Below, in pieces: positions 4,958 to 63,442 of a stretch of 64,000 nt of DNA (position 1 is its first letter; each line of letters begins with the position of its first letter). Made by a program: the position numbers and the translations under genes. The notes below the pieces were generated by a model. It had not been told where the DNA came from. It saw only the letters and a list, made by a program, of their open reading frames with translations, and ran no database searches. The DNA is taken from contig CM060732.1 of NCBI GenBank assembly GCA_030704615.1, positions 23,684,001-23,748,000 on the forward strand, written 5' to 3'. The stretch comes from Takakia lepidozioides. Taxonomy: Eukaryota; Plantae; Bryophyta.

Positions 4958-5080
4958 ACCTTGCGGCTATTGCCCTCTGTGGGGGCTGGGCCCTATAATA
5001 AACACAGGTGTCCGGTTGGACACCTAATAACCAAGGGTAGTGCCCCATAAGAGTGAACTAAGAGAGAGAGATAGAGACAG
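4730..5080 (-). repeat. Tandemly repeated LINE 3'-UTR modules separated by (GA)n tracts
   Basis: Units 4791-4925 and 4955-5098 are near-identical to each other and homologous to the 3' UTR of the adjacent element (5110-5190). Confidence 0.8.
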
Positions 5081-6312
5081 AGAAGACTCCGGCAGCCGAC
5101 GTAACTAAGAGCCACTTCACTTGCGGCTACTGCCCCTTTTCGGGGGTAGGCCCTATAAGAAAACAAGTGTTATGCAGGACACCAAGTAACTAGGGGTACA
5201 TAGGGTGCCCAGGGGGTACCCTGGGTATCTAGAGTATCGACGTAGATTTGGATTCATGTTGTCATTTGTTGGTAATAATAGTTGTGAGGGATCGGAGTGC
5301 CGTGAGGTGGATTGCTTTGAAACACTTAGGAATGGGGGGATGGGGATTTTGAAGTTGTCATGTATAGGGTTGATACTGGCATTATGTATGCCGCCTCTAG
5401 TACTGGCAGAAATGACGGTTAGTGGGCCGGTGATCCAGCCTCTACGGCGGATTGCAAAGATGAGCGGGGCATATTTTTGTCATTTTTCCACGATTGAGTC
5501 ATTGGGGTAGCGATCATTACAGTATGTAAATTCGATGAAGTAGATGGTGAGTTGTGGAGATGGTGTAGTGGGTGGTGGGGTGTTAGTGGGTAGGCCTTGG
5601 ACAAGGAGAATATCAGGGCAGAGTCTAGGGGTAAGTGCATGGTGAATGGGTACACGTACATGGGAGGAGCTACGATGGTACAGTGTGGTCTGGTGGTCGG
5701 CCTTGGTAGGTGCCGGCGTTAATGAGTGAGAACCACCTGGTTCAAGCGCGGTACAGAAGGAGTTTATGGATGTGCCAAACTGCGTGGTTGTGACGAGTGA
5801 TATGAAGGGCATGAATGATTGGATGGATACATTGGCTAAGGAGGTGTGGCCAGGTGTCGCGTTCATGATGGGTATTTAAGCATAGTGGGCAATATGGGGA
5901 TGGGAAAAGATGTGGCTAGAAGATGTGTTTACGTTGGTGGCCCATATATTGGGCGTACCTGAATTTGAGTGTTTGTCGGATTTGTGCATCGGTAGTGGCT
6001 TTGGTGTGCCAGAAGTGGTTTGATAGCTTATGATGGAGGACCGTGGACTGGGTCCATTTCTGAATGTGGACTTTGATGTGGCTAATAGATGCTACAGCTT
6101 GTTTGTTTGCTTCACGGGTCATAGTCGTCATAAGATTACGGATTGGTTTGGATGCGGGGGGGTCTGGGACTGGGTGTATGAACCAAAACGGGTGGGTATG
6201 AGCGATGTGAATAGGGTCATCGGTAGGGTCCACTATGGATTTAGAGGTGTCTGTCTAAGCAAGTAGATCCGTAGCCTCATTACCTTTAATGTCAGTGTGC
6301 GATTGTAGCCTA
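5081..6312 (-). mobile_element. 5'-truncated Dualen/RandI-like non-LTR retrotransposon (RNase H end, CCHC finger, RLE endonuclease), degenerate
   Basis: Minus-strand frames give LQSHTDIKGNEATDLLA (RNase H C-terminal motif), LSNHFW..LKFRYAQYMG, CPLC..HLLSQC..ITRHNHAV (CCHC plus RHN) and PDILLVQG..IYFIEFTYCNDRY..KYAPL (PD-(D/E)xK). The element ends in GCCGGAGTCTTC followed by a TC-rich tail. Confidence 0.75.
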
Positions 6313-30448: not shown

Positions 30449-33400
30449 CTAATCTGCTGCAATTGCTACCCTGGTCTTGATTGGCTTTAACTTAACCCCA
30501 AGGCTCTCTGGGGACAGAAGTTCTGGTGAGACACAAGGGGGACTAAGAGGACTGGTGGGTGTCGAAGAAAGAGCATGTGTGGGTCTTTGGTAGAATCCAT
30601 AGCCTATTAGGAATAACTCAATTGGCACTATCATCGAATGCGGCTGCTCTTGTGTGACCAAAGAGCCGCATGCTTGCACCTGCACGTGCAATGCCCACAA
30701 TCAGAACTTCTCTCATACATTAAGACCATGAAAGACAGTCACTTACTGAAGACAGCATTTCAGTAAGGACCTCTCTCTCTCTCTCCCTCTCCAATTGCAT
30801 TCACCAACTTTGAAAGTCTCGAGGCTGAGCCTAAAATTTGTCTTAGCCTTGTGGCTGGTGTATGACAGAGGGATAGAGAAAGAAAGAAGCTTTCTTATGT
30901 CCACAGAAAGCTCAAAGTGCTAATGTGGGACAAAAGCAAGCAAGAAATAAGGAAAAAAGAGGAGCCCAAAAAGAAGCCCAGAATCTAGTCTTCTTTATTG
31001 CGAGAGGGAGAGAGCATGTGAAAAATCACAACAGCTGCTGCACTTCCAACTGAAGGTGGAAAAGTAAGGGGAGACAGAAAAGGGTCTTCCTTACCTCAAC
31101 TAGAACATTGTATCGTCTATCCATTTCCTTGCTGATGTGCACAGCTTCATGATGAAAGGGAGAGTGCTCACCAACTATTATCAAAGTACGGCATTTTAGT
31201 TTCTTAAGGCCCTCACTCAGATCTACCCTCCTGCATACATCATAAATACAACAGTCAGAGCACCATTTACAAAAATACACTCCCTGATACCCTCCAACTT
31301 TGTGACTACTGTCGACCCTGAAAGATAAGGAATCGCAGCACGTATGCAGCTGTAGTTTGAAAGAGCTGGCCCAAAATCCAGAGTCACTGTTCGTACCCTT
31401 GAACTTTCCATCCCCCACTTCATCCATTTCCTTTGCTTGAGCCAAATATCTCCATGATTTTTCATCTTCTAAACTACCAAAGTTTAAAGAGTTAGCCAAT
31501 AAAGAGACAGTAACTGACGGTTGGACTTGAAGTTGCAAAACATTGGAGTACAAGTGTGAAGGACTCACAAGTGAATAGCTTGGATGAACCGCATTACATT
31601 CTTACTTTGCCTCTCATCCAATAGCTGCACACATCAACATTTGGGCCATCATGGCTGGATAATCACTAGTGACGACATCAAGAAGCAGCCTACCTCAGGA
31701 AATCATCTCAAACAAGTGCAAGCAATTTGAGGAAAATATTATCTGCTCTCTCTCTCTCTCTCTCTCTCCAAGTCTGTTCCAAGGTATGTCATACTACCGG
31801 CGTCAGCCCTTGACAAAGGCAGTTTCTGTCCCTTTGTGTTCCGCTCAAACAGAGCGTGGGGTCAATGGCGACAAGGCTACAGCAAACGACGCCTTATGAG
31901 TACCTTCTCTCTCAATGGCCACAAGGCTACGGCAAACGTCGTCTTACGAATACATTCTCAATGGCGACAAGGCTATGGCAAACACCGTCTTATGAGTACA
32001 TTCTCTCCCTCTCTCCCTCTCCCTATAATTTTGATAACTTCCGTCCAAAACTGGAATTTGAAGGGCCCAGGAAGAATCTTACTCTGCGGTAAGTTCTCAC
32101 TACATCCAACCCTGCATTTGAGGCATTCCGGACTTCCTGTCAAACATCCAATCACAGCAGCATATCATATATGACCTGATTGTATTACGATCTACCTACA
32201 CCTAAAAAGCAGTAAACTCATTCCTGTGAATTTGTAACGCCAAATACTCTTTCCCACATGCCGAGGGGTAGTTCAAGGCTATCATACAACTTCACAAACT
32301 TTTATAGTCTGGTGAATGCAGCCTCAATCCTTCATCCCCCGTTCGACAGAGTCTAATCAAGAATTTAGCTGACATACCTGACTAAAGTAGCGTTGTAGAA
32401 GTGTTTCCTTTACAAACTTTGACATGCCGCAAAAGTAGAGCAAGTTTATCATCGCCTGCATAACCCCAAGGTACGCCTCCATAAGGACTTGACTGAGGAC
32501 CAGCAACATACCTTCTTTAGATAGCTACAAGATGACAGATGGGACACCTTCAAGGTGAGAACGAGATCAACAAGCTTCTGAGTGTGGCTAATTCCAATGT
32601 TCATACCTTGTTGTAGAGCCACTCCGTCCAGCAGGCTGTCTGGCAAAGAGGAGACACCAGAATGAGACCTAGCATCCGTTCCCTGTATTTTAACTGCAAA
32701 GCAAAACACCAAACAGTCCGTTAAGTTCTGTAGAATTTAACCGTTAAAGCTTCAGATTCTAGAGATCTATGCAGCAAACTCCTTCATGAGACCCTAAGCT
32801 CTCAAGTCAGATGTTCTGGGTTAACTTCATCAACTTTTCACTCCACATCTTTCAGCCAGACAGCTTCCTGGAGATCACTTTTCACAATGTACTTTCAACC
32901 ACATGAGGCTTGTTCCTGACTGTACCGCAAAAAGAGTGAGGATGTAGGCTCCAGCTGCCACACCCAGTCCAATCACTTCTTGCAACCTGTGGCACCATCG
33001 AAAAATACTCAGGACTTGGACCACACAAGGTCATCCTCTTTGTCAATCATACTTGGCCATGAGGCTCACTGCCATCTCATGTGGACAACACTCTTCGCCA
33101 TACAAAAATGTGAGTCAATTGAGAGCATCAAAATTGTTGTCTGAATTGAACATTCCACTGGCACACACCTCACCACACACAAAAGGGATCAACAATCATC
33201 CAACTCTGAAACACAAAGCTAGGCTGCCCCCAGAAATAGTAGTCCAACTGACATTTGTCCTGAAAACATTTCACAACCTTGGCCCTACTAACTTTGTTTA
33301 TGCCTGCACTCCACCTCTCAACTTCAACAAGGAAATTGATCCCTTAATCAGAATACTGAAGCCATAGTCCGGAAAAGGTGCTCACCCAAAGTAATCTAAG

Positions 33401-49539: not shown

Positions 49540-50385
49540 TAAGGCAGGTACACTCAAGCTATCCAAAGCAAATGATTGTAAAAGTTGTATATATAAAAAT
49601 AATCAGTATTATACATGAAATTATCATTAGGTAGACGGTAAAATAAAAGAGACACGCAGTAGAAATAGAAATGTTGTGTTCGAATTCCACTGAAGCATTT
49701 TTTTCTCCTAAATGCATAGATTCGATGGAAAATGTGGCAAATAATAAAATGATGGCGGCAGAGAGGGACGGAACTCTAAAACGGTGATAGAAATGCCCAA
49801 ATTGTAGATGTATTCTATATTTTTACATCCAAAAATGGATGAAAAGACACGTGTCGCAAAGCTTAGGACTTTATTTTAATATTTTTTTTAAGAAAAAGAA
49901 AAAGAAAAAGAAAAAACCATATCTTTTACGAGATGTTGTCACGATGCTAAGATTGCTCTTGTGGTTAGTTCATATAGCCTTATCTCATTGTGGCACAATG
50001 CATCCGAAGTTCAAATCTCTTCATCATTATCTTTTAGTTATATCAAGTTAGGGGTTACAATTTTCTGCCCTAACCTAGCTAACTAACCCTAACACCCCAA
50101 CATTGTCGCATCGCTTCTTTGCTTGTCTTTCTCTTATTTGTTTTGAATTTTTGCGGGCGTTGCAGGGTGTTTGGACGGTGCACTAAAAACAACCCATTCC
50201 TACACCACATCGCAACATTTGCATTCCCACACATCATATGGTTCTCCCATGAAGTAATCTGTAAGTATAAATTTCCCTCATTCCAGCATTCTTTCTATCT
50301 TACTTTCGCTAGTTTGCTCATTTTGTTTACACCTTTGTAAGTCGGCTTGCTTTTGTTTTTACTCTTGCTTTTGCTTCTTCTTTCA

Positions 50386-51203
50386 TGACTACCATCAAGC
50401 GCAAGAGAGAGTGTTAGTTCTTGTTGGTAGATGATCTAGATCTATCCGTTAGAGATGCTATTTTTGAAGGTCAAGTTTTGAGCCGCTGTGGGAATTTCTC
50501 CAAACCTTCTGCCTTGGACTCTCCATCAACTTGGCAGTATCTGCATTGTAATATCACAGATAAGGAGGGCTTAACTACTGTCAGCATTACTATTTCATAT
50601 CTCTTATTCAGACCCCCACTGACAAATTTATTAGGGGCGGGTAGGTCCGTTTAAAGAATTTTTGTGTTTGTCCCAAGCTCAAGTTTGAGAAGTGAGACCT
50701 TGATTTTTGTATGAAGATAACTGCTGCTATGTGCAAACCATTGCACCTTTTCCAATCCATCATGTCTTGAATTTTTTGGCCAATGACACAATTTCCAGTT
50801 TTTCCAAGCGTTTTCATGATAAAATTGCAACAGCGACCATTGTTGTTTTTATTATCAGGGTCCATGGTCAGGTGAAACAATGCTTCGACTCGACTATGGC
50901 AGATGGTCTATCACAGAACGACATCCAAATTGTAAGATCATAATTCACTTTCAGTTCCATTCATGTTTTGTTATGTATTTTTACATTATTGAATGATTGT
51001 TTTTTTTATTGCATATGTACTATGTGAATTTTTATGTTACGTTTCATGCTGAGTATGAACGGCTAGTCCAAGAATTTCGTATAAGGGCTGCCACATATGT
51101 GCTATTCAAAAACATTGGTGCAACCTCCACTGGAGATGCCCGCCTCCTGACTCTTCTTTGCACTATTTTCTCTACTATGACGGATGTGGATGTTTCAGTT
51201 TAG
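50386..51203 (+). pseudogene. RPA1-like tandem OB-fold ssDNA-binding protein remnant (Helitron accessory gene)
   Basis: Broken frames read YLHCNITDKEGLTTVSITIS..DKFIRGG*VRLKNFCV.PK.KFEK, ATIVVFIIRVHG..MADG..DIQI and YVLFKNIG. This resembles DUF223/RPA70 OB folds. Confidence 0.5.
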
Positions 51204-51896
51204 GGTTTACTGTCACATTTTAGGTTTTAGCTTCTTCATGTTATCTTCTATGCTCAAAAACTATCTCTGTATTTTACAATTTTATGGATTTTCAGTATAT
51301 ATCTCTTCAAACATATAAAGACATCTAGATAAGTTTCTCAGTAATTATTTCAGTATTTTTGTCAGTATTTCAGTCAAAAAAATACTTTTCAGCTCATAAT
51401 AAACGTCATGTTTTCAAATGTCATATTATAATTTTATTTTCAAATTACTTCTTTATATTTATATTATCTCAATTACAAAAAAACAAAAAATTGTTCCATA
51501 TTTCTCATATTTATTTTATATTATTCTACTGCATGCCCAACCCATATATCTAATGTTTTCATTTTCACCAATTTTATTTCATAGTTTGAACATTTTAAAA
51601 TCTGACAATTGAATAAGACCAATGTATTAACTGGAAGTTTAATTTTTTACTTCATATCATATGATTTAATTACAGTAAAATAATTATATTCAAAATATTT
51701 TAATATAATTTTTTCACTAATATAATTTGTATTATATTTTTTATTCACCGATTATTGTTACGATTAACAACAAAATTTCTAATATTTACATAATTCTTAT
51801 TTTTATATTTATTAATATTTACATATTTAACTACAACATACTAAATTGCATCCAAAAAAATTCATCCATCCAAAAAAATTTACATTCATTTTCAAT

Positions 51897-52400
51897 ATGG
51901 ACATAGATTCAAATTTTGCATAGTTGGCAGCACTTTATGCAAAATTATCAATATATTGCTGGTGATTGTTTGTTTGATTTTATTGCATATTTATTGTATT
52001 ATGCGTAAACATCTACATCCTTAAGTTGTGACAACGTAACTAATTTCTTGCAAGCTTTGCAAACTCAAAATAATGATAGAACTGAAACAATTCAATCCAT
52101 TATTCTCAAGAAATTTTATATGAATTGCATGGCGTTCATTCGTTGCATAAGTTTACTCAAAAAATGGCTATCAGTGCTGCAAATAGAGGAACTTTGGAAG
52201 GTGATAATCTTTCCATCGTATGTTTGGCAAATGTTTTACAAACACCAATACATATGTGGTCTCGTATGAACAAACATATTATGTTTTCTGCAGACGATCA
52301 ATTTTCTACACATAATCCTCTACAAATTATGTATGATGATACATGTTCAACACGAAGTGGTCACTACGAACCCATTGTCTCCAACAATTTCAATTTGGCT
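51897..52400 (+). pseudogene. OTU-family cysteine protease domain remnant
   Basis: YIAGDCLFDFIAYLL (catalytic Cys loop, ~51950-51995), LEGDNLSIVCLANVLQTPIHMW and LQIMY..GHYEPI (catalytic His). Stops and frameshifts are present. Confidence 0.75.
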
Positions 52401-52734
52401 TATGTTGCTACAACACATATGTCATACAAACAATCCACATTTATTATCATGAGCATCAACATACATCACAAAAGACAGATACCACTATTTCTCACCAATT
52501 TCAAAATATCGAAAGCTCGATCTTGTCATGTCCATTAGTTGAATCCAAACCAAATAAAAATCGACAAAAAATAGTACATTTGCAACAAAAATTAAAACCA
52601 ACACGGTGTCATTGGTTGCCAATGCGTGATCAAATAATGACCGAATTAATAATTGAAATGTCAACTTCTACACTCAAAGATATATCTCAAGTATTTGCAA
52701 AAAAAATCGTGGATTTGAATTTGACCTTCACTCA

Positions 52735-53783
52735 GAGAGAGAAGACTCCGGCCAAAGCTGGTGTATCTAAGAGCCACTTCGCCTTACGTGGATGGCTTTA
52801 AAGCATTTGTGGATAGGGGGGATAGGGATTTTAAGATTGTCATGTAACGCGTTTATACTGGCGATATGAATCCCACCTCTAGTACCTGTTGTGATAACTG
52901 ATAAGGGGCCGGTGTGCCACCCACACTGGCGGATGGCGAGGATGAGGGGGGCATATTTTTGTCGTTTCTCTAGAATGGAGGGGGCTGGGTATCGGTCATT
53001 ACAGTATGTGAATTCAACAAAGTGAATGGTTAATTTGGGGAAGGGGAAGTAGGTAGGGGGGTGTTGATGGGTAAGCATTGGACAAGTAGGATATTCGGGC
53101 AGAGCCGAGAGGGACAGGTACAGGGTGAGTGATGACAACTACACGGAAGTATCCAGTGAATGATAGTGTGGTCAGGGGGTCAGCCTTGGTAGGTACCAGC
53201 ATTGATAAATAAGAACCATCTGGTTTCTGATCTGGACATGAGAAGTTTATGGATGTGCCAAACTGCGTGATTATGGCGAGTGACGCGGAGATCATGTATA
53301 ACAGGGTGAGTACATTGACTAAGGAGGTGGGGCCAGGTGTCACGCACTATATGTGTATGTGAGCATAATGGGCAGTTGGGGGATGGGAATAGGCGTGGCC
53401 AAAAGATGTGCTTGCGTTGGTGTCCTATGTATTGGGCGTAACGAAATCTGAGTGTTTGTCGGATTTGCGCGTCGGTGATAGTCTTGGTGTGTCAGAAGTA
53501 GTTTGACAATTTGTGATGAAGAACTGTAGATTGTGTCCATTTTTGGATATGGGCTTTGGTATGGCTGGTAGAGGTTGAGGCTTGTTTGTGTGCTTCGCGT
53601 GTAAGAGTGGATTTTAAGTTACGTATAGGTTTGGTAGTAGGGGGTCTTGGTACTGGGTGAATTAGCCAGAATGGATAGGGTCGACCGTGGGATCCAGTGG
53701 GGATTGGGCGGCCCCTACCTAGGCGAGGAGGTATGCGTTTTTGTTACCAGTGATACCAGTGTGGGAGCAAACTTTGAGAAAGT
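52735..53783 (-). mobile_element. Second 5'-truncated Dualen/RandI-like LINE, nested in the Helitron
   Basis: Homologous to 5081-6312: HFLKVCSHTGITGNKNAYLLA (RNase H) and LTIHFVEFTYCNDRYP..EKRQKYAPL (RLE), with the same GCCGGAGTCTTCTCTCT terminus. About 200 bp of 3' UTR is deleted. Confidence 0.78.
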
Positions 53784-54350
53784 GTAAGAGGTCCATGGCG
53801 ACATTGTCAGAGCTGCAATTGTACCACATGTCATTCTAAACAATACCCTCGTGGACATGTATGAAATGAACGAGATGTGGTGTCGTGGAACTCGATGCTT
53901 GCAGGGTATGCACAGCAGGGGCACTGGATGGAGGCTTTGGCACCAGATGTTGTGCTTGGCACACTATGTAAACCCAATAAGACCAGGGAGTAGTTGAGCA
54001 GCTCAGTCTCAACCCTTTCCTAGTGCCAACAAACTCTGACGTGGATTCACGCCAAGAAAGGTCTGGAAGCTGGAAAGCAGGTGCACACTCACAAGCATCG
54101 CAGGGTATGCACAGCAGGGACGTGGGATGGTGGATTTGGAGACCTATGATCAAGTTATGGGGGAAGGGGTGAAGCCCAACCACATCATGTTTTTGTGTTA
54201 TTGCAATGTTTGTGCAAGCCTGACAGCCCTGGAAAAGGTCAAAAGAGGTCTATGGTGACATTGTCAAAGCTGGAATTGTACCACATCTCATTCTGAACTC
54301 TGCCCTGGTGACATGTATGTCCAATGTGGGTGCATTGAGGATGCAAAGCA
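53784..54350 (+). pseudogene. Scrambled, duplicated PLS-class PPR fragments
   Basis: EVHGDIVRAAIVPHVILNNTLVDMY..ERDVVSWNSMLAGYAQQGH, and GVKPNHIMF..CASLTALEK..EVYGDIVKAGIVPHLILNSALV.MY..CGCIEDAK, with frameshifts. Confidence 0.85.
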
Positions 54351-55499
54351 AGGAACTTATGTGTACTCTGTTTATGTACTGGGTGTGGCAGGGAGGCTTT
54401 GGAGATTGTGAATGGGTGATGCGTGGTAGATGAACCTCATGTGTATTCTGATGCCTGTGCTAGTCTTTGAGCACTGAAAAAGTGGAAATGGATCTGTATG
54501 TATTTGTAAGCCTATACGTTCTGATGTGAGGTTCTCTGGTTTTATGACAGGAACAAAACAATTGTGAGCAGGAAGTGAAGGGGTAATCAAATGATGCTTC
54601 CAGGTACATTTTCTATTATGCATTTACGGCAAGAGAAAATATCTTTGTTGTACAGTCAGATTTCATTGATTCTGGTCCTTTAGGTCAACACCTAATCCTT
54701 GCATAGTAGGTCCCTAGATTACTGGCCAAGAAGTGGCAGTAAGTTTCTCTGTGCTGGGGACTAGTGAATTTAGATGTGATCCAAGCTTAGAATTACCACC
54801 TGTGTTGTGACGTCTATCTCTTTCACTAATGGGCTATTTGGAAGCAGTAGCTAGGACTCAAAAGCATAGCATTTGCCTCCTACCATAGCCATGGTTGTCC
54901 ACTGCCTCTTGAAAGCTCTTCTGGCTGCATCATGCTCTACTTCTACCGACATGTCTGCTAGATAGACGGTTGGACCACCAAAAGAAAGCTGGTCGGGAGA
55001 TACTGGTGGGTCCACAGCCAGCCCAAATTTCTGACAGTGCACCACACTCATATCTTCGTATGAGAGGATCTCGAAACTATCCTGAAAGCTCATTCCTGAG
55101 CTCGTATAGATTTCTGCAAGCTTTTCATACACATGAGCAGTGGCAGTAGTACTCATGCCACTCTGAAGGTGTTAAGATTGATTATATCAATATCAATATC
55201 ATATCAATTTTATCATCAATTTTATCATTATCATTATCATTATCAATATTATTATCAACATCAGTATCGCTATCATTATCAAGACAAATGATTTTGATCA
55301 AAAACGTTTATTTTTATCAAGCCGGATTTTTAACAAGGATAATTATTTTTATCAAGACACGAGTTTTATCAAAAACAACTATTTTCATTAAAATTTCATA
55401 TAAACCTGAACAGTCATTATTTATTTTATCAAAACGCTAATGTCATGTCCACCGTGAATATAATTATTTATTTATAAATCATATTTTCAGATGTGTATA

Positions 55500-58400
55500 G
55501 TTCTAAATTAAAATAGAAAAAGAAATTACTAATGCTAAGAGACGGGCAAAGTATGCTTTAAATAAAGAGAAATTATATGATGGGTGACGGAAAAGATGTA
55601 AATCTCAACCGACTCCCGATTTAGACATAAAAAATGCTAAACGAAGGGAAAAATACAAATTGGAACATCCACCACAAACCACACAAACAGATCCAGACGA
55701 AACAAATGCTAAACGCAGGGAAAAATTCAGAATCGAAAATCCACCACAAACTATGAAAATAAATCCACACGAAACAAATGCTAAACACAGGGAAAAATTC
55801 AGAATCAAAAATCCACCACAAACCACCGAAAATAGATCAAGACAAGACAAATGCTAAACGTAGGGAAAAATTCAGAATCAAAAATCCACCACAAACCACC
55901 GAAATAGATCAAGACGAGACAAATGCTAAACGCAGGGAAAATTTCAGAATTGAAAATCAACCACAAACCACGAAAATAGATCCAAACAAAACAAATGTTA
56001 AACGACGGGGAAAATACAAATTCGAACATCCACCACAAATCACAGAAATAAATCCAGACGAAACAAATGCGAAACGAAGGGCAAAATATGCATTCCAAAA
56101 AAACCAAGATCCATTGATCAAAAATAAAATATGTGCTGCACAAATTCAGAAATATATTACAAACGAAAATGAAGAAAAAGAAAAACTCAAAAGAAAAAGA
56201 GAGCAAATGTATTGCACTCTTGCAAAAAAACCAAAGAACGATCATGAGTTCCCACCAGAAATATGCCTGGAGAATAACTTGTTTTGTTTATCCAACTTCA
56301 ACGAATACATTAGTAATGCGACTTTCACAAATCTGTATTGTTGTGTTTGCAGCAGAGACATAGCAACCTCTAACATGTTGAAATGGAGAATCGATGAATT
56401 ACACAGCAAGATCTTAAAACACATGAAAAAATGGCTCAGCCTACAAGTAGAAAACCACTTCGAAGAACATATTCTTCTACAGGAGGTTCCCCAAGAATTG
56501 ATCAATGACACAAAACATCAGCTGGATGAATTAAATGGGTTGTTATTGGACAAACGAGGAGTATCAAATATTGCACGTACCATCTTCAATTGTAAAAACT
56601 GCAGTTTCATCTTGAAAAGAACAAGTTGCCAAAGTTTACACTCGCACGGTTTGTGGATCGGAAAAGTTCACGACATTTTGCCAAATTAACCATGGTTGAA
56701 GAAGCGTTAATAGCAAGATACCGTTGTCGTGTGATGTTGTTCAAATTACGATATGTAAATAAGGGCGGAAATGGACAACGCGCATTGAGAGGAAATTTGA
56801 TGAGTTTTGCTCAAAATCCAGGTCGTGCGGTCGAATTGCTGAACAAATTGCCACCACCCTTAGTTTCATTATCCGATATTATCGCCGTCCACTTCGTCGA
56901 CACTTCACATCCACCCGCTAACATCGTGAAAACATATAATTTGCTATACGTACGTAGACTTGCAGTGACGACATGGTTAACATGGCTGAAAAATAATCAC
57001 ACGGGTTACAAGGACATTCAAATTGATAACGACATAGGACTACCAGAGAACGATATTCCATCATCAATCTTGAGATCGGTGTTTGAATCCACGGACATTG
57101 ACTTCGCCAACGCTGAACATCGTACCAACATAACGGATTTACACAACAAAAAAACACCAATAAACAAAGATGACGATACGATCCAGCCCGTCATAGACAC
57201 GTTTGGACTCATCGATTTTGACGGAATCGACATAAAACACGACGACCTAATCTCCAACGCTTTAAATGGATTACAACTACAACAAAACATGTACCTGTCA
57301 TACACGCATGAAACCGAAATGGTGAATGAATACGTAAACCCAAAACTGATCGCGTGCATGTTTCCAACGTTATTTCCGTTTGGAATTGGCGTAACCGAAA
57401 TGAAAAACCGTCAAAATAAAGTAACTTTGGAGGCCCACGTTGAGTATTTGATGAGTCTGACTGATATCCATCACGACTTTTGGAAACACCACATGTTTCC
57501 ATTCTTCATGTTCAATTTGATGCAACATAGACAAATATGCCTAGGCGCAAAATTGACAGTGTCGAGATCGGCATTTCAAAGTGAAGCACAACTCCTTAAC
57601 AATATCCGTTCAGAAGACTTCAACGACATAATAGACGACGTGAAAACAATAAACAACAAACCGAAAATATAAAAGTTATTGCGACACTTGAAAGTATCAA
57701 GTATACACGTGATGGCATCTGGAAGCAGTCGCGCAACACAGAGAAACGAAATATTCAGCATGATACAGCAGTTGGGAACACCAAATTTATTCTTCACTTT
57801 GAATCCAACATTCGTACATCATCCTCTAGTGTCCCTACTAAGTGGGAACGACATCAATCTTGACATTTTTTTCGATAACAACCTCCCGGACCACAATAAA
57901 AGACGTGCAATTGCCACTACGAATCCGAGATCTCAAGCTAAATTTGTACACATCATCGTGAATGCAATTTTTAAATACCTACTCCGTGTCAGAGAGACTG
58001 CCAAAACTACCATAACAAATACGGGAGTACTTGGAAACATAAACGCATATTACGGTTGTTACGAAACCGCGAAAAATGGTTCACTTCACATACACACATT
58101 GTTGTGGCTAGAAAATGTCCCAAATCCAAACAACCTCGTACAGAAATTGAAAGACGACGAAGAATTCAAATGTAAAATGTTGGCATATTTGGACAACATC
58201 ATAGTATGCGACTTGATCCAATTCAAATCCAAAATACCAGTCGACGACGATATTCCAGCCACTACCATTGACTCTGAGAACGAAGAAAACAATGTAAACA
58301 CCGAAATTCATCCGTGCACTACTAGACCTCCCGATGTTCACTCTAAAAAATTTCATGCTCACTTTGCGCGCGACGTTTCAAAACTGCTGAATGTATGCAA

Positions 58401-59500
58401 TCGTTACGTCTGCAATCCCTCGTGCTACAAAACCAACAAAGACGTTTTCAAAAAGAATTGTAGATACAGATTTCCCGCTGTCTTAGTTGAAGAAACACAT
58501 TTCGACGACGAAACCGGGCTGTTGCATATAAAACGAACCGACGGATGGTTGAACAACGCAAATCCATGGATGTTAGTATCAGGAAGATGCAACCACGATT
58601 TGAAATTCATCGGTGCTTCAGGGAAACGCAAAGGCTCTGATATACTACATCACGGATTACATCACAAAATCTTCCGTCTACACATCACACATGTATTCGC
58701 TCTTGCAAATAGCCGTAAAAAAAATCAAAACGACTTATGACGATCTATATTCCGAATATTCAGTTGAGAAAAGCCGCAAATTGTTGATTCGATGTTTAAA
58801 CATGATCGGATCGCAACAAGAGATCTCAGCAACAAGGGCAGTCAGTTACCTTATGAAATATCCAGACCATTTGACAGTCCACCAGTTTGCATATTTGCCG
58901 TGATATAGTTTATCGGCATGGATTCGCGAACAAGAAAAATCTCAATCGAACGAAGATGGAAACAACGATCTGAACAGCACACCTGACGATAACGACCCCG
59001 AAAACACCTTCGAAACATTCAAAATTGAGAGATCCAAACATAATGACAAGTTGATTATGTATAATTTTCGTATCGACTACCAAAGCAGACCACACAAGTT
59101 CGGGGAAATGTCACCTTACGAGTTCTGCAGTAAATTGTGCAAGGTAAAAAGCCCGTACTACTACAAATTCATGCATGAACATCTGCAAAGTGACACCCAC
59201 AGTGTATATGAATCTCAAGTAACCAAAGTGCCGGTAATGCAAGGCTACAAAATACCATCGAAAAAAAATGATGCGGCAACGTACGCTCACGCTATTTGTA
59301 TTCTGTTCATGCCATGGAGATATATCCACGACTTAAAGCCAAGATCACAACAAAGTTGGGAAGACACTCTTGACGAACTATATCCAACATGTTCGGAATT
59401 CAACAGAAAAATCATCGCAAATATCAACATGCTACATGAATGCAAAGAATCACGAGACTCCGACAGACTGTTACTGAAGAACGAAAATCCAGACGACGAT
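55500..59500 (+). pseudogene. Helitron Rep region (zinc-finger-like, DUF6570-like, Helitron_like_N, HUH-Y2), frameshifted
   Basis: LTMVEEALIARYR..QRALRGNLMSFAQN, MFPTLFPFGIG, GTPNLFFTLNP, HUH GSLHIHTLLWL, CRYRFP, RCNHDLKFI and Y2 motif ALIYYITDYITK. Confidence 0.92.
55630..56100 (+). repeat. 72-bp (24-aa) coding tandem repeat, ~7 units, at the RepHel N-terminus
   Basis: Repeated NAKRREKFRIKNPPQTTEIDQDET-like units. Confidence 0.9.
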
Positions 59501-59909
59501 GAGAACCCAAAAGACATCAACATCGATCCCTTATACAATGAGATGCTAGACGAAATGCACGAAGACGATGACAACGATATATATGTAGACGAGAATTCGG
59601 CGTCGCAACATATAGAAGACATAGTCACAAATGGCCAGAAGTTACAAATCGAATATTTTATGTGCAATACAAGCGAAAACAATTACGTGGCCAATATTAT
59701 CAACAAGCTCGTTACGGATGCCAACGGGAAAATATCACCACGACCCCATACCGCACCAAAAATAAGAATGGTCCAAACTGCATCCAAAAAATCAAAGAGA
59801 ACCCAAATCAATAAATGGTTGAAAACATTACGCGAATCCAAAAATCCGCCCGCTGGCATTGACAACGGACTGTACGAGTCCGCAAATGCAACTACAACCA
59901 TAAGTCCAA

Positions 59910-60240
59910 TGGGCTTAGAGGTAGAGGACGCGTCCGGTGGTTGCTATGTTGCAACCTCTCGAGCTATGGGTGAGCAACGCAGAGTGCGGAATACACTTCC
60001 CTTGCTGGTCTCTCTGCCTACCGAGACGGTACAGGTAGTGAGTGGGGGCAAGCATGTGAGGACCATGGGGTGCATGCATCCATGGCACACGTGGGAGGTG
60101 CTTGAGGTTCAGAGGGAGTTGGCAGCCAAGGCGGCGGTGATGGATGAGTTTGGGGATTTTTCTCGGGTTGAGGAAGTCCTCGAGGATGAGATGATGGGGC
60201 AGGATGAGGCCTTGTCATTGACTGAGCAGGCAGGGAGTCA
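59910..60240. mobile_element. 331-bp TG...CA insertion with a 5-bp TSD (solo-LTR-like)
   Basis: G-rich segment inside the A/C-rich Helitron ORF, flanked by TCCAA at 59905-59909 and 60241-60245. Confidence 0.7.
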
Positions 60241-60485
60241 TCCAAAAATAATAACCTTCACCACAAAAATCCAGAATTGAGGGAAATTCCAAAAAACGAA
60301 CCAAGGGACATCCCAGATGACGACAATTACGATGTAGATCCCGATATCGTGCACAATGCAGATCAACATCAAATAGCTAAATATTTTTTCATGAAAAAAT
60401 ACAAGCTCAACACTTCGCATGAATCAGCATTTGAACGTTTCATAGACCCACAAAATCACCATCTCGATGTAAGGAACAAACGTTA

Positions 60486-61880
60486 ATGTACGTGGGAGGT
60501 GCTGCCAAAACGGGAAAGACCGAAATAATTAAAGCAATGCAAACGTACTTCATAAAAACCAAGAGACCAAAAATCTTGAAAATCGGTGCTTACACAGCCA
60601 ACGCCGCAACCCTCATACGGGGATCAACCATCCACGCTCTATTGGGATTCAAAATCAGCCAGAACATCAATGAATACACAAAAAATTTCATAAACGAATG
60701 GTCGGGAACTGAATATTTGATTATAGACGAAGTATCTATGGTCGGATGCAACATGATCGCCGATATTCATCTGAAATTACAAAAATTCAAATCAAACATG
60801 TTACCCTTTGGAGGACTCAACATAATATTCATGGGCGATTTCATGCAGTTCCCACCAGTCACCGACGCGCCTCTCTACTCAACGAACATACATCCCATAT
60901 TCACATTCACAAAATACACAGAGAAAAAAATTATAGGCAAAAGTCTATGGGAAAATTACATACGCCCTAACACAATCATATTGACCCAGCAAATGAGACA
61001 AGCCCACGATGTACAATATGTGAAATTGCTACCAAATCTATGCGAAGACAACTTCACCCAAACGGATTTCGAATTATTACATACAAGATTCATGTCAAAC
61101 CTGAAAGTCAACCTGCTCAACGAACCCTGGGATAAAGCAACGTACATTGTACCTCGTAACCAGTTAAAAAACGTCAACAATCACCAAATGATAAAATATT
61201 ACAGACGTAAATCTAACCACGCGTCCTACACCATAGTAGCCACAGACACCTACAAGAAATACACACTCCGCGACAAGATCCAATTCGCAATCTGACAGAC
61301 TGAACCTGGGAATAGAAACCACAACCTTCTTCCATTTTTTAGATTGTACAAAGGAATGACAGTCATGCTTACCGACAATTTGTATCCTAGATTGGGGCTT
61401 GTAAACGGTGCAGTCAGACAAATAGTGGGGATCTCAACAACAGACGACGATTGGATCGTACGGGAAGATAACTTAATGCACCCGCCACATCACGTACTAA
61501 TCGACTTCAACAAATTCATGAGTCAACAGCAAACATTGAGCAACGTAAATTTAGAAAATCTCCCAGAAAACGTAGTGCCGATTACACCCGTTTCAAGAAC
61601 GTTCGATTATCTCCACACGGAGGATGAACAAAAAAAACCAAAGAAATTCAAAATCAGCAGACACCAATTGCCTCTGATACCCGCCTATTGCCTAACCGAC
61701 TACAAAGGCCAAGGCAAAACTTTCGACAGAATAGTCATCGACTTACAAAAATCACCAGATGGACACCCCTTCAACATGCACAACATCTACGTCACACTGT
61801 CTCGTTTGCGTTCCCTACAAGGACTAGTAATACTTCGAGAAATCAAGTTCGAAGACATCCAGGCAGCCAAATTCAAGACA
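60486..61880 (+). pseudogene. PIF1-family SF1B helicase of the Helitron
   Basis: GGAAKTGKT, IIDEVSMV, GDFMQFPPV, LTQQMRQ, GLVNG, RHQLPLIPAYCLTDYKGQGKT and YVTLSRLRSLQGL. Confidence 0.93.
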
Positions 61881-62199
61881 TGCTCACTGCAGTTCATGGC
61901 TCCACAAACCGATTGTAATGTCCAAGAACAAAAATCATACAAGACCACGGAACACATCAGCACGGTGAATACCAACCCTGCCATCAAAACACCACATCCA
62001 CATCCAATCCAACCGAGACACGTATCCAAAAAAATACAAGTGACAACCGATTCTAAAGCCAAACATCCCACACCAATAGAACCAAATGAAAACCGAACTT
62101 GCTCAGAATTATCTCCCACACCAGTCAAAGTCATAGAAATCGACTCCGAAGACGAACAATCCAACACAGAACACGCAGATATACATCAAGAAACATATT

Positions 62200-62747
62200 G
62201 GCATGAAGATCTTCTATTGACGATGCACGACGAACAAATCTTGTTGGATGATAACGGATGGTTGTGTGACCAGCATTTGGCGGCCGGGATGCAAATACTA
62301 TTTGATCAGGAACTAGAAACAAAAAACTACCGGCAACATGCGTATTCGACTTTACTGGGGCAGAACGAAATACACCAAGAAATGTCTGCAGAACATGTTC
62401 GTGAACAACAACCATTGGATTTTAACCATGATAAACCCGAACGGAACGAAAATCATCAATGTACGGTGTTTGATTCCAGCATGCCCGCGGATAAGAAGTT
62501 ACCGAGCGAAATAGAACAACATCTAAAAAAATTAATCCCAGTCCCACAATTCAATTATTTCTATGCCGATGTCATGCAACAAAGTGACAGTTCATCATGT
62601 GGCGTATTTGCGATAGCTTATGCCACGGATATAGCATTCGGATTAGCTCCCGCAGATTCCCGATACGCAACATCGGCCATGAGAACCCACTTGAGAGATT
62701 GCATAAACGATCGAAGAATTGATCCATTTCCAAAACAACATTCATAA
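62200..62747 (+). pseudogene. Ulp1/C48 SUMO-protease-like domain fused to the helicase C-terminus
   Basis: GWLCDQHLAAGMQIL, catalytic His in NNNHWIL (shifted frame, CAT at 62413), VFDS and QQSDSSSCGVFAIAYA. Confidence 0.85.
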
Positions 62748-63150
62748 TATGAAGACCCGATATGACGTGACATTTGTTCTTATCGTTCCGCCTCAGTGTC
62801 TTGGTGCTTTGGAGTTGAATTTCTCGATTTTCTAGGTGGATTTTCTTTTTTTGGGCTGGGGGTATTCAATGTAAATGTTAACAGCACTTCCAAATATCAC
62901 TTCAATTTCGTAATAAACACATTTCAATTCACTAAAACTTCATAATAATATTGATTCTGATTTTTGTCTCTCGTCTATATTTTGAATAGTTGAAAATGTA
63001 GATATATTAAATTACTATTACCCATATTCCCTCGCCCTCATTTTAAAAGTGACCTTGAATTGAAGGGAGTGTATATAATAATTTTAGTCCAGATGCCAGT
63101 GGATCATTGGCGGGTTACGACTACTACGCCGCCTAAACAAACTACACATA

Positions 63151-63442
63151 CCGTACTTACCTAGCTTATTAGGCAATTATTAATTTAAAATAAGTGCGTA
63201 ATTAAATTTAGAACATTTTTGGAAAATGTGCCTAAAACTTGGAAAATTTTCTTGAGAAGTGCCTAATAGCCCGGAAATTCTGAAAAATACCAAAATTTCC
63301 AAATATGTGGAAACAATGCATAAATTATATTATTTAAAATCCAAAAAATAGAAAAATAAAAACAAAAAAACAACATACCATTTAAATTTTCATTTTATTA
63401 ATTATTATTGGTGGAAGTGCCTAATAAGCTAGGTAAGTATGG
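63151..63442. mobile_element. Tc1/mariner(pogo)-like MITE
   Basis: 25-bp TIR CCGTACTTACCTAGCTTATTAGGCA with one mismatch. TA lies at the left flank and AA at the right. Confidence 0.75.

Follow-up and report, generated by a model that had tools for sequence, protein, structure and literature searches.

In the HELIANO definition (Li et al., NAR 2024, PMC11417382), HLE2 elements combine DUF6570, an HUH Rep domain and a PIF1 helicase in one gene, and DUF6570 is reported to be specific to them. The same study described HLE2 from land plants in 2024, including HelenSM92 of Sphagnum magellanicum, named DUF6570, OTU, RPA and Peptidase_C48 among HLE domains, and listed OTU, UCH, Herpes_teg_N and Peptidase_C48 as their ubiquitin-like-modifier proteases. 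In this catalogue RPA and OTU lie upstream of RepHel in HLE2, and all domains except DUF6570, Herpes_Helicase, Herpes_teg_N and UvrD_C_2 occupy separate ORFs (PMC11417382). Two RefSeq "uncharacterized proteins" of the sand fly Lutzomyia longipalpis, XP_055685061.1 (P0043) and XP_055685660.1 (P0008), are Helentron-type polyproteins with DUF6570-Rep-PIF1 and C48-like domains. Finally, KI-MULEs (Ulp1-carrying Mutator-like elements) and Ginger1 (with a C-terminal Ulp1 or OTU; Bao, Kapitonov and Jurka 2010, PMC2836005) associate a transposon or transposase with a clan-CE Ulp1-like protease.

We show that the window (the whole stretch of 64,000 nucleotides analysed) holds a degraded HLE2 transposase gene at 55.55-62.75 kb on the + strand, in which a C48 protease domain belongs to the transposase ORF itself instead of being loose cargo. 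The core, ~55.2/55.5-63.1 kb, is very probably a rolling-circle transposon of the HLE2 (Helitron2/Helentron) group, a dead copy of what was once an autonomous element. Like the HLE2 of HELIANO, it has DUF6570, Rep and PIF1 in one gene, and it shares with HelenSM92 its occurrence in a seed-free land plant. The Pfam domains all lie on one strand in the order DUF6570, Rep, PIF1 and are followed by C48 (Table 1), catalytic motifs are found in all three enzymatic domains, and the gene is collinear with the full-length HLE2 proteins P0086, P0109 and P0127. The copy is called dead, as an earlier note had proposed, because it contains three in-frame stops and at least seven frame changes. The components of the architecture are already listed for HLEs, land plants included (PMC11417382). 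Because the fusion recurs in related elements of other genomes and in intact proteins of insects, elements of this kind, with a fused SUMO-protease-like domain, are under-described, yet not new; what is new against that catalogue is the place of C48 within the transposase ORF.

Table 1. Features annotated between positions 51,955 and 63,150 of the window.
Feature	Position	Strand	Evidence
OTU-like cysteine-protease remnant	51955-52379	+	Motifs by eye; ESM-Atlas neighbours
Unrelated block between OTU remnant and RepHel	52734-55150 (2.4 kb)		blastn/tblastn in window, composition shift, direct repeats
AT-rich non-coding leader	55172-55545	+	Repeat analysis, TRF
Tandem array, 72-nt units encoding basic 24-aa repeats (TNAKRREKFRIENPPQT...)	55546-56192	+	Repeat search, TRF, translations
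Cys-rich N-terminal region (CCVC ... CKNC)	56201-56686	+	tblastn, cysteine motifs
DUF6570 domain (HLE2 marker) and linker	56596-57669	+	Pfam PF20209, E 1.3e-29
HUH Rep endonuclease domain	57673-58900	+	Pfam Helitron_like_N (57673-58737), E 3.9e-19
Rep-helicase linker	58904-60483	+	Two frame changes
PIF1-type SF1 helicase	60486-61895	+	Pfam PIF1 (60435-61292), E 3.7e-17; Pif1_2B, E 1.6e-4
Low-complexity linker	61896-62183	+	Same open frame as helicase and C48
Ulp1/SENP-like (C48) protease domain	62184-62747	+	Alignment, profile vs PDB, Pfam on relatives
3' non-coding tail	62748-63150	+	Fold and terminus comparisons, none significant

The single large gene would encode one polyprotein running from the basic 24-aa repeats through the Cys-rich region, DUF6570, HUH Rep, PIF1 and the low-complexity linker to the Ulp1/SENP-like protease, and its active ancestor would have moved like other Helitron-like elements, through nicking by Rep and unwinding in the 5'-to-3' direction. 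The 24-aa repeats, DUF6570-type Rep-HUH and PIF1 helicase named in the earlier note are all confirmed. A repeat search finds seven copies of the 72-nt unit, and TRF gives a period of 72 with 6.3 copies, 84% matches and no indels; within the transposase reading frame the array forms the N-terminal part, and its basic repeats could possibly serve nuclear targeting. The DUF6570 segment is closed by an in-frame stop at 57670-57672. Rep retains its HxH motif (LHIHTLLW, 58084-58107) and, downstream of a frameshift, its two catalytic tyrosines (IYYITDYITK, 58640-58669). The linker that follows has no Pfam domain and includes a GC-rich stretch at ~59800-60230. The helicase has Walker A (GGAAKTGKT, 60495-60521), Walker B (60717-60740) and the 2B domain, is interrupted by an in-frame stop at 61293-61295, and is matched in tblastn by P0086, P0109, P0127 and P0008.

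We compared pieces of the window by tblastn with 71 fetched loci. Related loci (L001-L031, L034-L035, L038, L043-L045, L050, L052 and L058-L064, from ENA assembly ERZ25073694 and JGI metagenome contigs Ga0116226-31, Ga0209208 and Ga0209611) have, like the window, the Cys-rich region, DUF6570, Rep, linker, helicase and C48 in that order. The Cys-rich region is conserved in L002, L005, L006, L024, L026, L027 and L044, a piece of the Rep-helicase linker in L004, L005, L009, L030, L043 and L044, and five loci (L005, L006, L009, L030 and L044) are collinear with the window over the whole gene. The related loci share a helicase clade with the window, which groups there with L001, L002, L006, L015 and L044 (SH-aLRT 100). 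As in the window, every copy is decayed, and deletion derivatives occur. Amino-acid identity to the window is just 35-55%; moreover, the related loci lack the 24-aa repeat array and the OTU, have a conserved same-strand upstream gene of unknown family that is absent from the window, and end in a 3' terminus (GTTGTCAYTGGTAG...GAGCCC[AT]A) that is not recognisably retained in the window.

The extent of the element depends on what lies upstream of the transposase gene. Of the OTU domain that the earlier note had placed there, the motifs stand: translations read by eye, and only in this way, give a Cys motif (IAGDCLFDF, containing GDCLF; 51955-51981, frame 0), followed by a single in-frame stop and a single frameshift, a central LEGDNLSIVCLANVLQTPIHMW (52194-52259) and a His motif (SGHYEPIV, containing GHY; 52356-52379), both in frame 2. 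An ESM-Atlas feature search agrees, with OTU in 24 of the 30 nearest named clusters (score 0.94, 201/256 features shared). Homology did not follow, the piece having no Pfam, NCBIfam, PDB or PHROG match and no homologue, and we regard the OTU assignment as weakly supported. The remnant lies on the same strand ~3.2 kb upstream of the transposase gene, or 0.8 kb once the foreign block between them is discounted. On its left this block has a dispersed repeat, 52734-53674, which matches 5075-6191 of the window with 74% identity; GC-rich PPR-like fragments with an internal duplication follow at ~53788-54430, and the right edge is approximate. The block has no Pfam match, and no target-site duplication was found.

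On balance, the OTU remnant was probably once part of the same element or its N-terminus. Its same-strand position immediately upstream of RepHel is the published HLE2 pattern (PMC11417382), and its distance to DUF6570 without the insert, ~600 aa, resembles that between the N-terminal protease and DUF6570 in P0008, ~520 aa. Both observations count against a less likely alternative, in which the element is only ~8 kb long (~55.17-63.14 kb) and the remnant comes from some other decayed element or from a pseudogene, the two being neighbours by coincidence in a region rich in transposons; so do the remnant's nearest Atlas clusters, which are auto-named "hypothetical protein", partly Pfam-annotated, and come from eukaryotes as diverse as oomycetes, Preaxostyla and rotifers. 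In favour of this shorter element are the foreign block and the AT-rich, repeat-bearing leader directly before the transposase gene, the latter (an ATCA-rich microsatellite at 55184-55282 and three 35-36-nt repeats at 55290-55392) being a possible alternative 5' region. Two independent copies also mark the element span in relatives (L005 2225-10632 against L044 2871-10599), and the 8.4 kb that they share agrees with 8 kb and contains a different upstream gene in place of an OTU. A weak 23-nt inverted match (55236-55258 with 62939-62961) would fit the same limits, but it is low-complexity and AT-rich.

The earlier note had instead delimited one 13.25-kb element, 49864-63116, with an RPA-like OB-fold gene, OTU, RepHel-Ulp1 and a 3' end formed by a subterminal repeat and hairpin. 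A compositional break near 49.6-49.9 kb, the same-strand OTU remnant and the placement of RPA and OTU in published HLE2 (PMC11417382) would suit such an element; nevertheless, we consider it unlikely. The OB-fold/RPA gene placed at 50.4-51.2 kb is not supported, since 49.8-52.0 kb lacks such a signal in every frame and on either strand (no Pfam, NCBIfam or PHROG match, no usable Atlas match), and this segment is T-rich on the + strand, unlike RepHel, whose coding sense is A-rich. None of ~26 related loci has anything that matches the OTU or "RPA" pieces beside RepHel-C48, even with hits up to E 0.5 admitted. Nor is 49.86 kb linked to 63.1 kb by a terminal repeat, inverted or direct, and a 5' end at 49,864 is not supported. 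The hairpin reduces to a 5-bp GC stem (63109-63133) that folds no better than shuffles (z-score 0.13). The true 3' end is somewhere within the 3' tail, in which TCATTGG...GCCGCCTAA recalls the conserved terminus of the relatives only loosely and not significantly, with no nucleotide similarity to their termini. Of the canonical HLE2 features, neither the short terminal inverted repeats nor the 3' stem-loop nor the TT target could be shown, and the 64-kb window holds no second copy of the element.

The C-terminal C48 domain seen in the earlier note is upheld by a family profile, Pfam alone giving a sub-threshold match (18.1 bits, cut-off 20.7). This profile, built from the window pieces and relatives, matches SENP5/2/1 and Ulp1 structures in the PDB at E 2e-8 (SENP5) to 8e-5 (Ulp1), and the C48 of the relative P0009 reaches 36 bits in Pfam. 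The window copy keeps NGWLCDQH (62253-62276), the His (NNNHWILT, 62404-62427, in another frame), the Asp (TVFDSS, 62463-62480) and the Gln and Cys (QQSDSSSCG, 62577-62603), with two frameshifts splitting the domain, and the ORF ends ...PFPKQHS before its stop. A stop-free segment of 483 codons (61296-62744) carries helicase, linker and C48 in one frame. Thus, the protease is bound more tightly to the transposase than the earlier note supposed, lying in the same ORF, in frame at the helicase C-terminus and not in a separate one as in the HLE2 of HELIANO; also unlike HLE2, the window element has no endonuclease, GIY-YIG or RPA domain.

By sequence comparison, we show that related elements forming a well-supported clade have kept the helicase-C48 fusion, and that it is also present in intact ORFs found elsewhere. 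The helicase C-terminus directly precedes C48 in ~26 of the 71 loci (metagenome or assembly), and the HW and YDS motifs, which played no part in retrieving the loci, are conserved across related ones. The C48 catalytic residues are likewise conserved throughout this clade and in intact proteins from other sources. Ulp1 is a common cargo of MULEs, which speaks for a recent, lineage-specific capture of the domain as passive cargo, from a host ULP gene or a Ulp1-carrying Mutator element. Such a capture is nonetheless very improbable, even though HELIANO treats Peptidase_C48 as captured and as having an ORF of its own (PMC11417382), given that the same C48 subfamily is helicase-fused across the whole clade at 35-55% amino-acid identity, that intact ORFs of a metagenome (P0028, Rep-PIF1-C48, C48 at 1484-1643 of 1661 aa) and of a sand fly (P0043, with a C48-like domain downstream of the endonuclease, residues 2588-2754 of 2755) have the fusion, and that the window C48 is marginal to the general Pfam model and close to the transposon-borne subfamily.

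The sand-fly proteins have C48-like domains of the window's subfamily (hhalign probability 97-98%, E 9e-11 and 5e-13). P0043 (DUF6570-Rep-Hel-EN-C48) ends in this domain exactly as the window gene does, and likewise in ...PFP. P0008 carries in addition a DUB-type protease at its N-terminus (Herpes_teg_N), so that two protease types are already united with RepHel in one RefSeq transposase. The sand-fly proteins differ from the window in their animal hosts, intact ORFs, extra C48-like copies between DUF6570 and Rep, an AP-endonuclease domain in P0043, and helicases distant from that of the window in the tree; nor do their N-termini resemble the OTU piece.

During transposition, the fused protease would have SUMO or some other ubiquitin-like modifier as its target; candidate substrates are SUMO, NEDD8 and ubiquitin. 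The leading hypothesis is that it would desumoylate chromatin or repair factors, or else the covalent Rep-DNA intermediate itself, letting the intermediate escape silencing or removal. Anti-silencing, protection of the Rep-DNA adduct and self-processing are roles that it may have had. KI-MULEs and Ginger1, which share this type of protease, are DDE cut-and-paste elements, in contrast to the HUH/helicase rolling-circle element of the window, and the Ulp1 of plant MULEs usually has a gene of its own instead of being fused to the transposase. In some relatives of the window C48 (P0089, P0103 and P0149, from the Atlas or library) the protease is followed by a PHD finger, the arrangement also seen in Ginger1.

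We find that the transposon carries a single long broken gene on the + strand (~55.55-62.75 kb), recognized by translation into stop-free pieces, on each of which Pfam was run separately. The gene has three coding features by which the HLE2 (Helitron2/Helentron) group is known: a Rep with an HxH motif and two tyrosines, a PIF1 helicase that follows Rep within one gene, and a DUF6570 domain N-terminal to Rep. The 24-amino-acid repeats, the DUF6570-type HUH Rep and the PIF1 helicase, all of which the earlier note had read from the sequence, were recovered with the matches and motifs listed in the table, and TRF agrees on the repeat array (period 72, 6.3 copies, 84% matches, 0 indels). Three full-length HLE2 proteins (P0086, P0109 and P0127) are collinear with the gene in tblastn over the stretch that starts with DUF6570 and closes with the helicase. 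In-frame stops interrupt the gene at three places (after 57669, 58900 and 61292), its frame changes at least seven times, and the same note's judgement that this is a dead copy is therefore confirmed. In contrast to Helentrons sensu stricto, which carry a C-terminal endonuclease, the window gene ends in a C48 (Ulp1/SENP-like) protease domain, and no window piece had a Pfam match to the Exo_endo_phos (apurinic/apyrimidinic) endonuclease that marks those elements; P0043, a protein of the sand fly Lutzomyia longipalpis, has both domains. Within the linker between Rep and helicase, the stretch 59800-60230 is richer in GC (0.45-0.53 versus ~0.40) and unlike the remainder in composition, while its frame stays open. 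A captured fragment or a minor insertion might account for it, and no second copy of it lies elsewhere within the window.

Features of the element, its upstream region and the upstream gene of related loci
Feature	Position	Strand	Basis
OTU-like Cys motif IAGDCLFDF (GDCLF)	51955-51981	+	by eye
OTU-like central motif LEGDNLSIVCLANVLQTPIHMW	52194-52259	+	by eye
OTU-like His motif SGHYEPIV	52356-52379	+	by eye
72-nt tandem array, 7 copies, encoding 24-aa repeats	55546-56192	+	repeat finding
DUF6570 (PF20209)	56596-57669	+	Pfam, E 1.3e-29 (103.8 bits, cut-off 24.3)
Helitron_like_N (HUH Rep)	57673-58737	+	Pfam, E 3.9e-19
Rep HxH motif LHIHTLLW	58084-58107	+	translation
Rep catalytic tyrosines (two), IYYITDYITK	58640-58669	+	translation
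PIF1, AAA_19, AAA_30	60435-61292	+	Pfam, PIF1 E 3.7e-17
Helicase Walker A	60495-60521	+	translation
Helicase Walker B	60717-60740	+	translation
Pif1_2B and sub-threshold Peptidase_C48	61296-62744	+	Pfam, Pif1_2B E 1.6e-4, Peptidase_C48 E 2.5e-3
C48 WL.D.H motif	62253-62276	+	A3 alignment
C48 catalytic His, NNNHWILT (HW)	62404-62427	+	A3 alignment, other frame
C48 catalytic Asp, VFDSS (DS)	62463-62480	+	A3 alignment
C48 Gln/Cys, QQSDSSSCG (QQ...SCG)	62577-62603	+	A3 alignment
Upstream gene of related loci	L005 3404-3930; L044 4048-4643; L015 5247-5522; L024 7517-7992; L006 92-304		

One open frame of 483 codons (61296-62744) comprises the C-terminus of the helicase, a low-complexity linker of ~100 amino acids and the protease, and the gene closes with ...MRTHL...PFPKQHS before its stop. 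Two frame breaks fall within the C48 domain, whose middle part, including the catalytic His, has slipped to another frame, and three window pieces together tile the domain in an alignment with library relatives (A3). Aligned in this way, the His-Asp-Cys triad and the oxyanion Gln are all present in canonical order, and the A3 profile matches the solved structures of SENP5 (E 2e-8), SENP2 (7e-8), SENP1 (1e-7) and Ulp1 (8e-5). Judged by these residues and profile matches, the domain is a predicted clan-CE protease of the C48 type, as the earlier note had proposed for the C-terminus. Pfam Peptidase_C48 gives 18.1 bits on the window piece alone, under the cut-off of 20.7; among the relatives, it is matched at E <=0.1 by five of the nine rows in A3, and one protein, P0009, exceeds the cut-off with 36 bits.

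The arrangement of helicase and protease recurs well outside the window. An exhaustive representative search with the 483-codon frame returned 2889 matches, the top ones being short fragments of 45-50% identity. Two of these lie on long ENA contigs (L001 and L002), where single tblastn alignments run collinearly through helicase and C48-like region, and a metagenome scan with a second C48 alignment (A4) yielded 69 loci. In tblastn with window pieces, C48 lies directly downstream of the helicase C-terminus in ~26 loci, and five (L005, L006, L009, L030 and L044) preserve the whole order of Cys-rich region, DUF6570, Rep, linker, helicase and C48. Most loci keep the HW and YDS motifs, though these were outside the retrieval patterns. 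In a helicase tree made up of HLE2-like matches only, the window clusters with L001, L002, L006, L015 and L044 (SH-aLRT 100), and the sand-fly proteins and the metagenome protein P0028 are placed apart from this group. The tree is compatible with one origin of the C48 association as well as with several. For the tree, the one in-frame stop of the window helicase was read as X, which was dropped in the local BLAST locator, and stop-containing pieces of the relatives were likewise read with X for the tree and the local HMMs.

All related genomic copies are decayed, and intact reading frames come from proteins. P0028 (1661 aa) combines Rep, PIF1 and a C48-like domain at 1484-1643 in an intact ORF. 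P0043 (XP_055685061.1, 2755 aa) is intact as well and carries DUF6570, Rep, PIF1, the endonuclease and a C-terminal C48-like domain at 2588-2754, which hhalign relates to the family with a probability of 97% (E 9e-11). It belongs to a set of intact Helentron-type RefSeq proteins of 2569-2935 aa from Lutzomyia longipalpis (P0008/P0156/P0157 and P0043/P0159) in which DUF6570 and Rep are separated by one or two internal C48-like domains; P0043 and P0159 add the further domain at the extreme C-terminus. P0008 (XP_055685660.1) joins an N-terminal Herpes_teg_N protease to two such internal domains (hhalign 98%, E 5e-13). At E <=0.001, Pfam reports C48 neither in P0028 nor in the long Lutzomyia longipalpis proteins.

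Several loci depart from the full arrangement. L001 and L002 are internal-deletion derivatives in which the start of DUF6570 is joined straight to the helicase and Rep is lost, and L001 is also split by an LTR retrotransposon. L024-L027, a single locus assembled in several metagenomes (>99% identical), is a deletion derivative with DUF6570 joined straight to the last third of C48. A separate C48 subfamily, with RQSNHYDCG and KQPNSYDCG motifs, is found in L032, L039-L042, L047-L049, L051 and L053-L057 (WLWD/WLWI contigs); on these long, eukaryote-like contigs, no RepHel (Rep plus helicase) lies within 10 kb of the domain, and this subfamily presumably belongs to another kind of element or gene.

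Much of this biology has precedents. According to the HELIANO report (PMC11417382), HLE2 elements are known from six land-plant classes, DUF6570 is an HLE2-specific marker, OTU and RPA genes upstream of RepHel have already been reported for HLE2, and Peptidase_C48 is among 20 stably associated domains, described there as separate ORFs. It was also known that animal Helitrons can carry OTU and that Ulp1 or OTU occurs on other transposases (PMC2836005). Since these reports cover the components, the element belongs to an already known kind: it is itself a dead copy of a transposon group whose host range has been reported. What differs is the position of the protease, which occupies separate ORFs in the HLE2 elements of HELIANO, whereas in the window and its relatives it is in frame with the helicase. 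Literature searches returned no description of a RepHel-Ulp1 fusion. Our data offer a modest refinement, namely that in several HLE2 lineages the transposase includes C48 as a conserved part in the same frame.

The useful result is that a SENP/Ulp1-like protease is repeatedly fused in frame to a Rep-helicase. This fusion, catalytic residues included, is conserved in a plant-associated clade and also in intact ORFs of insect and metagenome origin. Current annotation under-reports it: in the full-length proteins, the domain escapes the Pfam C48 model. The fusion suggests that HUH/helicase transposases need, for mechanistic reasons, to deal with SUMO or ubiquitin-like marks. While Rep and helicase would carry out rolling-circle transposition, the fused protease might remove SUMO-like marks during the process, and its possible roles include countering silencing, protecting the Rep-DNA adduct and processing a polyprotein. 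SUMO on the covalent Rep-DNA intermediate, or on repair or silencing factors, might be stripped off, letting the intermediate escape SUMO-dependent DNA-protein-crosslink repair. If the protease does protect the covalent intermediate, transposition would be linked to that repair pathway. A broader proposal, which we consider rather unlikely as it stands, is that the Ulp1/SENP-like domain is an ancient integral catalytic module, not cargo, shared by a wide range of HLE2 transposases in hosts from insects to mosses, that it is largely missed by standard Pfam and needed for rolling-circle transposition in chromatin, and that in some lineages it acts alongside an N-terminal deubiquitinase of the OTU or Herpes_teg_N type.

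Upstream of the repeats, the earlier note had placed an OTU domain and an RPA-type OB-fold gene, both as companions of RepHel. Motifs of an OTU protease can be read by eye in the order Cys, central, His, across one stop and one frameshift, and 24 of the 30 named ESM-Atlas neighbours of 52086-52400 are OTU clusters (top score 0.94, 201/256 shared features, recognition 2906). Pfam gave no OTU (PF02338) match at E <=10 for 52086-52535 or neighbouring pieces, which also had no NCBIfam, PDB or PHROG match; a homology search with the OTU piece found no homologue of 82-262 aa, BLASTP against the sand-fly proteins gave no match, and a single-sequence AlphaFold model was unusable (pLDDT 36). In our view, an OTU remnant is probably present. 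Its connection with RepHel is tentative, because a block of different composition intervenes between the remnant and the repeats, because a search for a target-site duplication flanking that block (52.7-55.15 kb) gave none, and because the upstream pieces of the window, the OTU piece among them, have no counterpart in 71 related loci even at E <=0.5; very loose tblastn of these pieces against L001 and L002 gave noise only. The block begins with a dispersed repeat (52734-53674) that is 74% identical over 890 bp to window 5075-6191; it is preceded by (GA)n and an AGACTCCGGC...CTAAGAGCCACTTC module, and what follows it differs between the two places. After it come fragments that look PPR-like by eye (~53788-54430), with an internal duplication spaced by 457 nt.

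The RPA claim found no support. Pfam was blank for all stop-free pieces in 49.7-52.0 kb of >=30 aa on the + strand and >=38 aa on the - strand. For 49.7-51.3 kb, 21 such pieces (14 on the + strand and 7 on the - strand) gave no relevant match (DUF223, Rep_fac-A) in Pfam, NCBIfam or PHROGs, and the best OB-fold candidate had no usable Atlas match. The relatives do have a conserved gene on the same strand ~1 kb upstream of RepHel. Pfam, PDB, PHROGs and homology searches assign it to no family, and HMMs of this gene found no counterpart in the six-frame translation of the window. In its C-terminal half (FDKENKLIDGASIVGGDFVLVKCYIKYW...GLTLEL), the gene recalls, by eye, the ssDNA-binding proteins of the phage T7 gp2.5 type, which we offer only as a lead.

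The ends of the elements were compared among copies. L005 and L044 are independent copies whose similarity spans L005 2225-10632 (8.4 kb), with no clear terminal inverted repeats at the ends of the shared stretch. A 3' terminus GTTGTCAYTGGTAG...GAGCCC[AT]A is common to the L005/L044/L006 group and the more distant L001/L002 pair, two families in which shared sequence has only ~66-70% DNA identity, and this terminus is probably a Rep recognition or termination signal of the clade. HLE2 termini are described as short terminal inverted repeats with a stem-loop after the right repeat and insertion between T and T. The ends of the window element had no significant similarity to the relatives' termini, and its row in the MAFFT 3'-end alignment is unreliable. 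Nothing significant was found in the way of terminal inverted or direct repeats in this one copy; the one inverted match between its ends, 55236-55258 with 62939-62961, is of low complexity. The 3' hairpin that had been taken for the end of the element is not supported: its stem is just 5 bp of GC with a fold z-score of 0.13. The ends given in the earlier note, 49864 and 63116, are putative positions. The stop codon (62747) and the start of a MITE-like insertion (63151) must bracket the 3' end. This insertion, just past the 3' tail of the transposon, measures 292 bp (63151-63442); its terminal inverted repeats are 28 nt long and 93% complementary, and it contains internal repeats of the AAGTGCCTAA type. 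Elsewhere in the window, an ORF on the - strand (31029-31568) matches the Ndr family (E 1.7e-9) and probably represents a host-gene exon.
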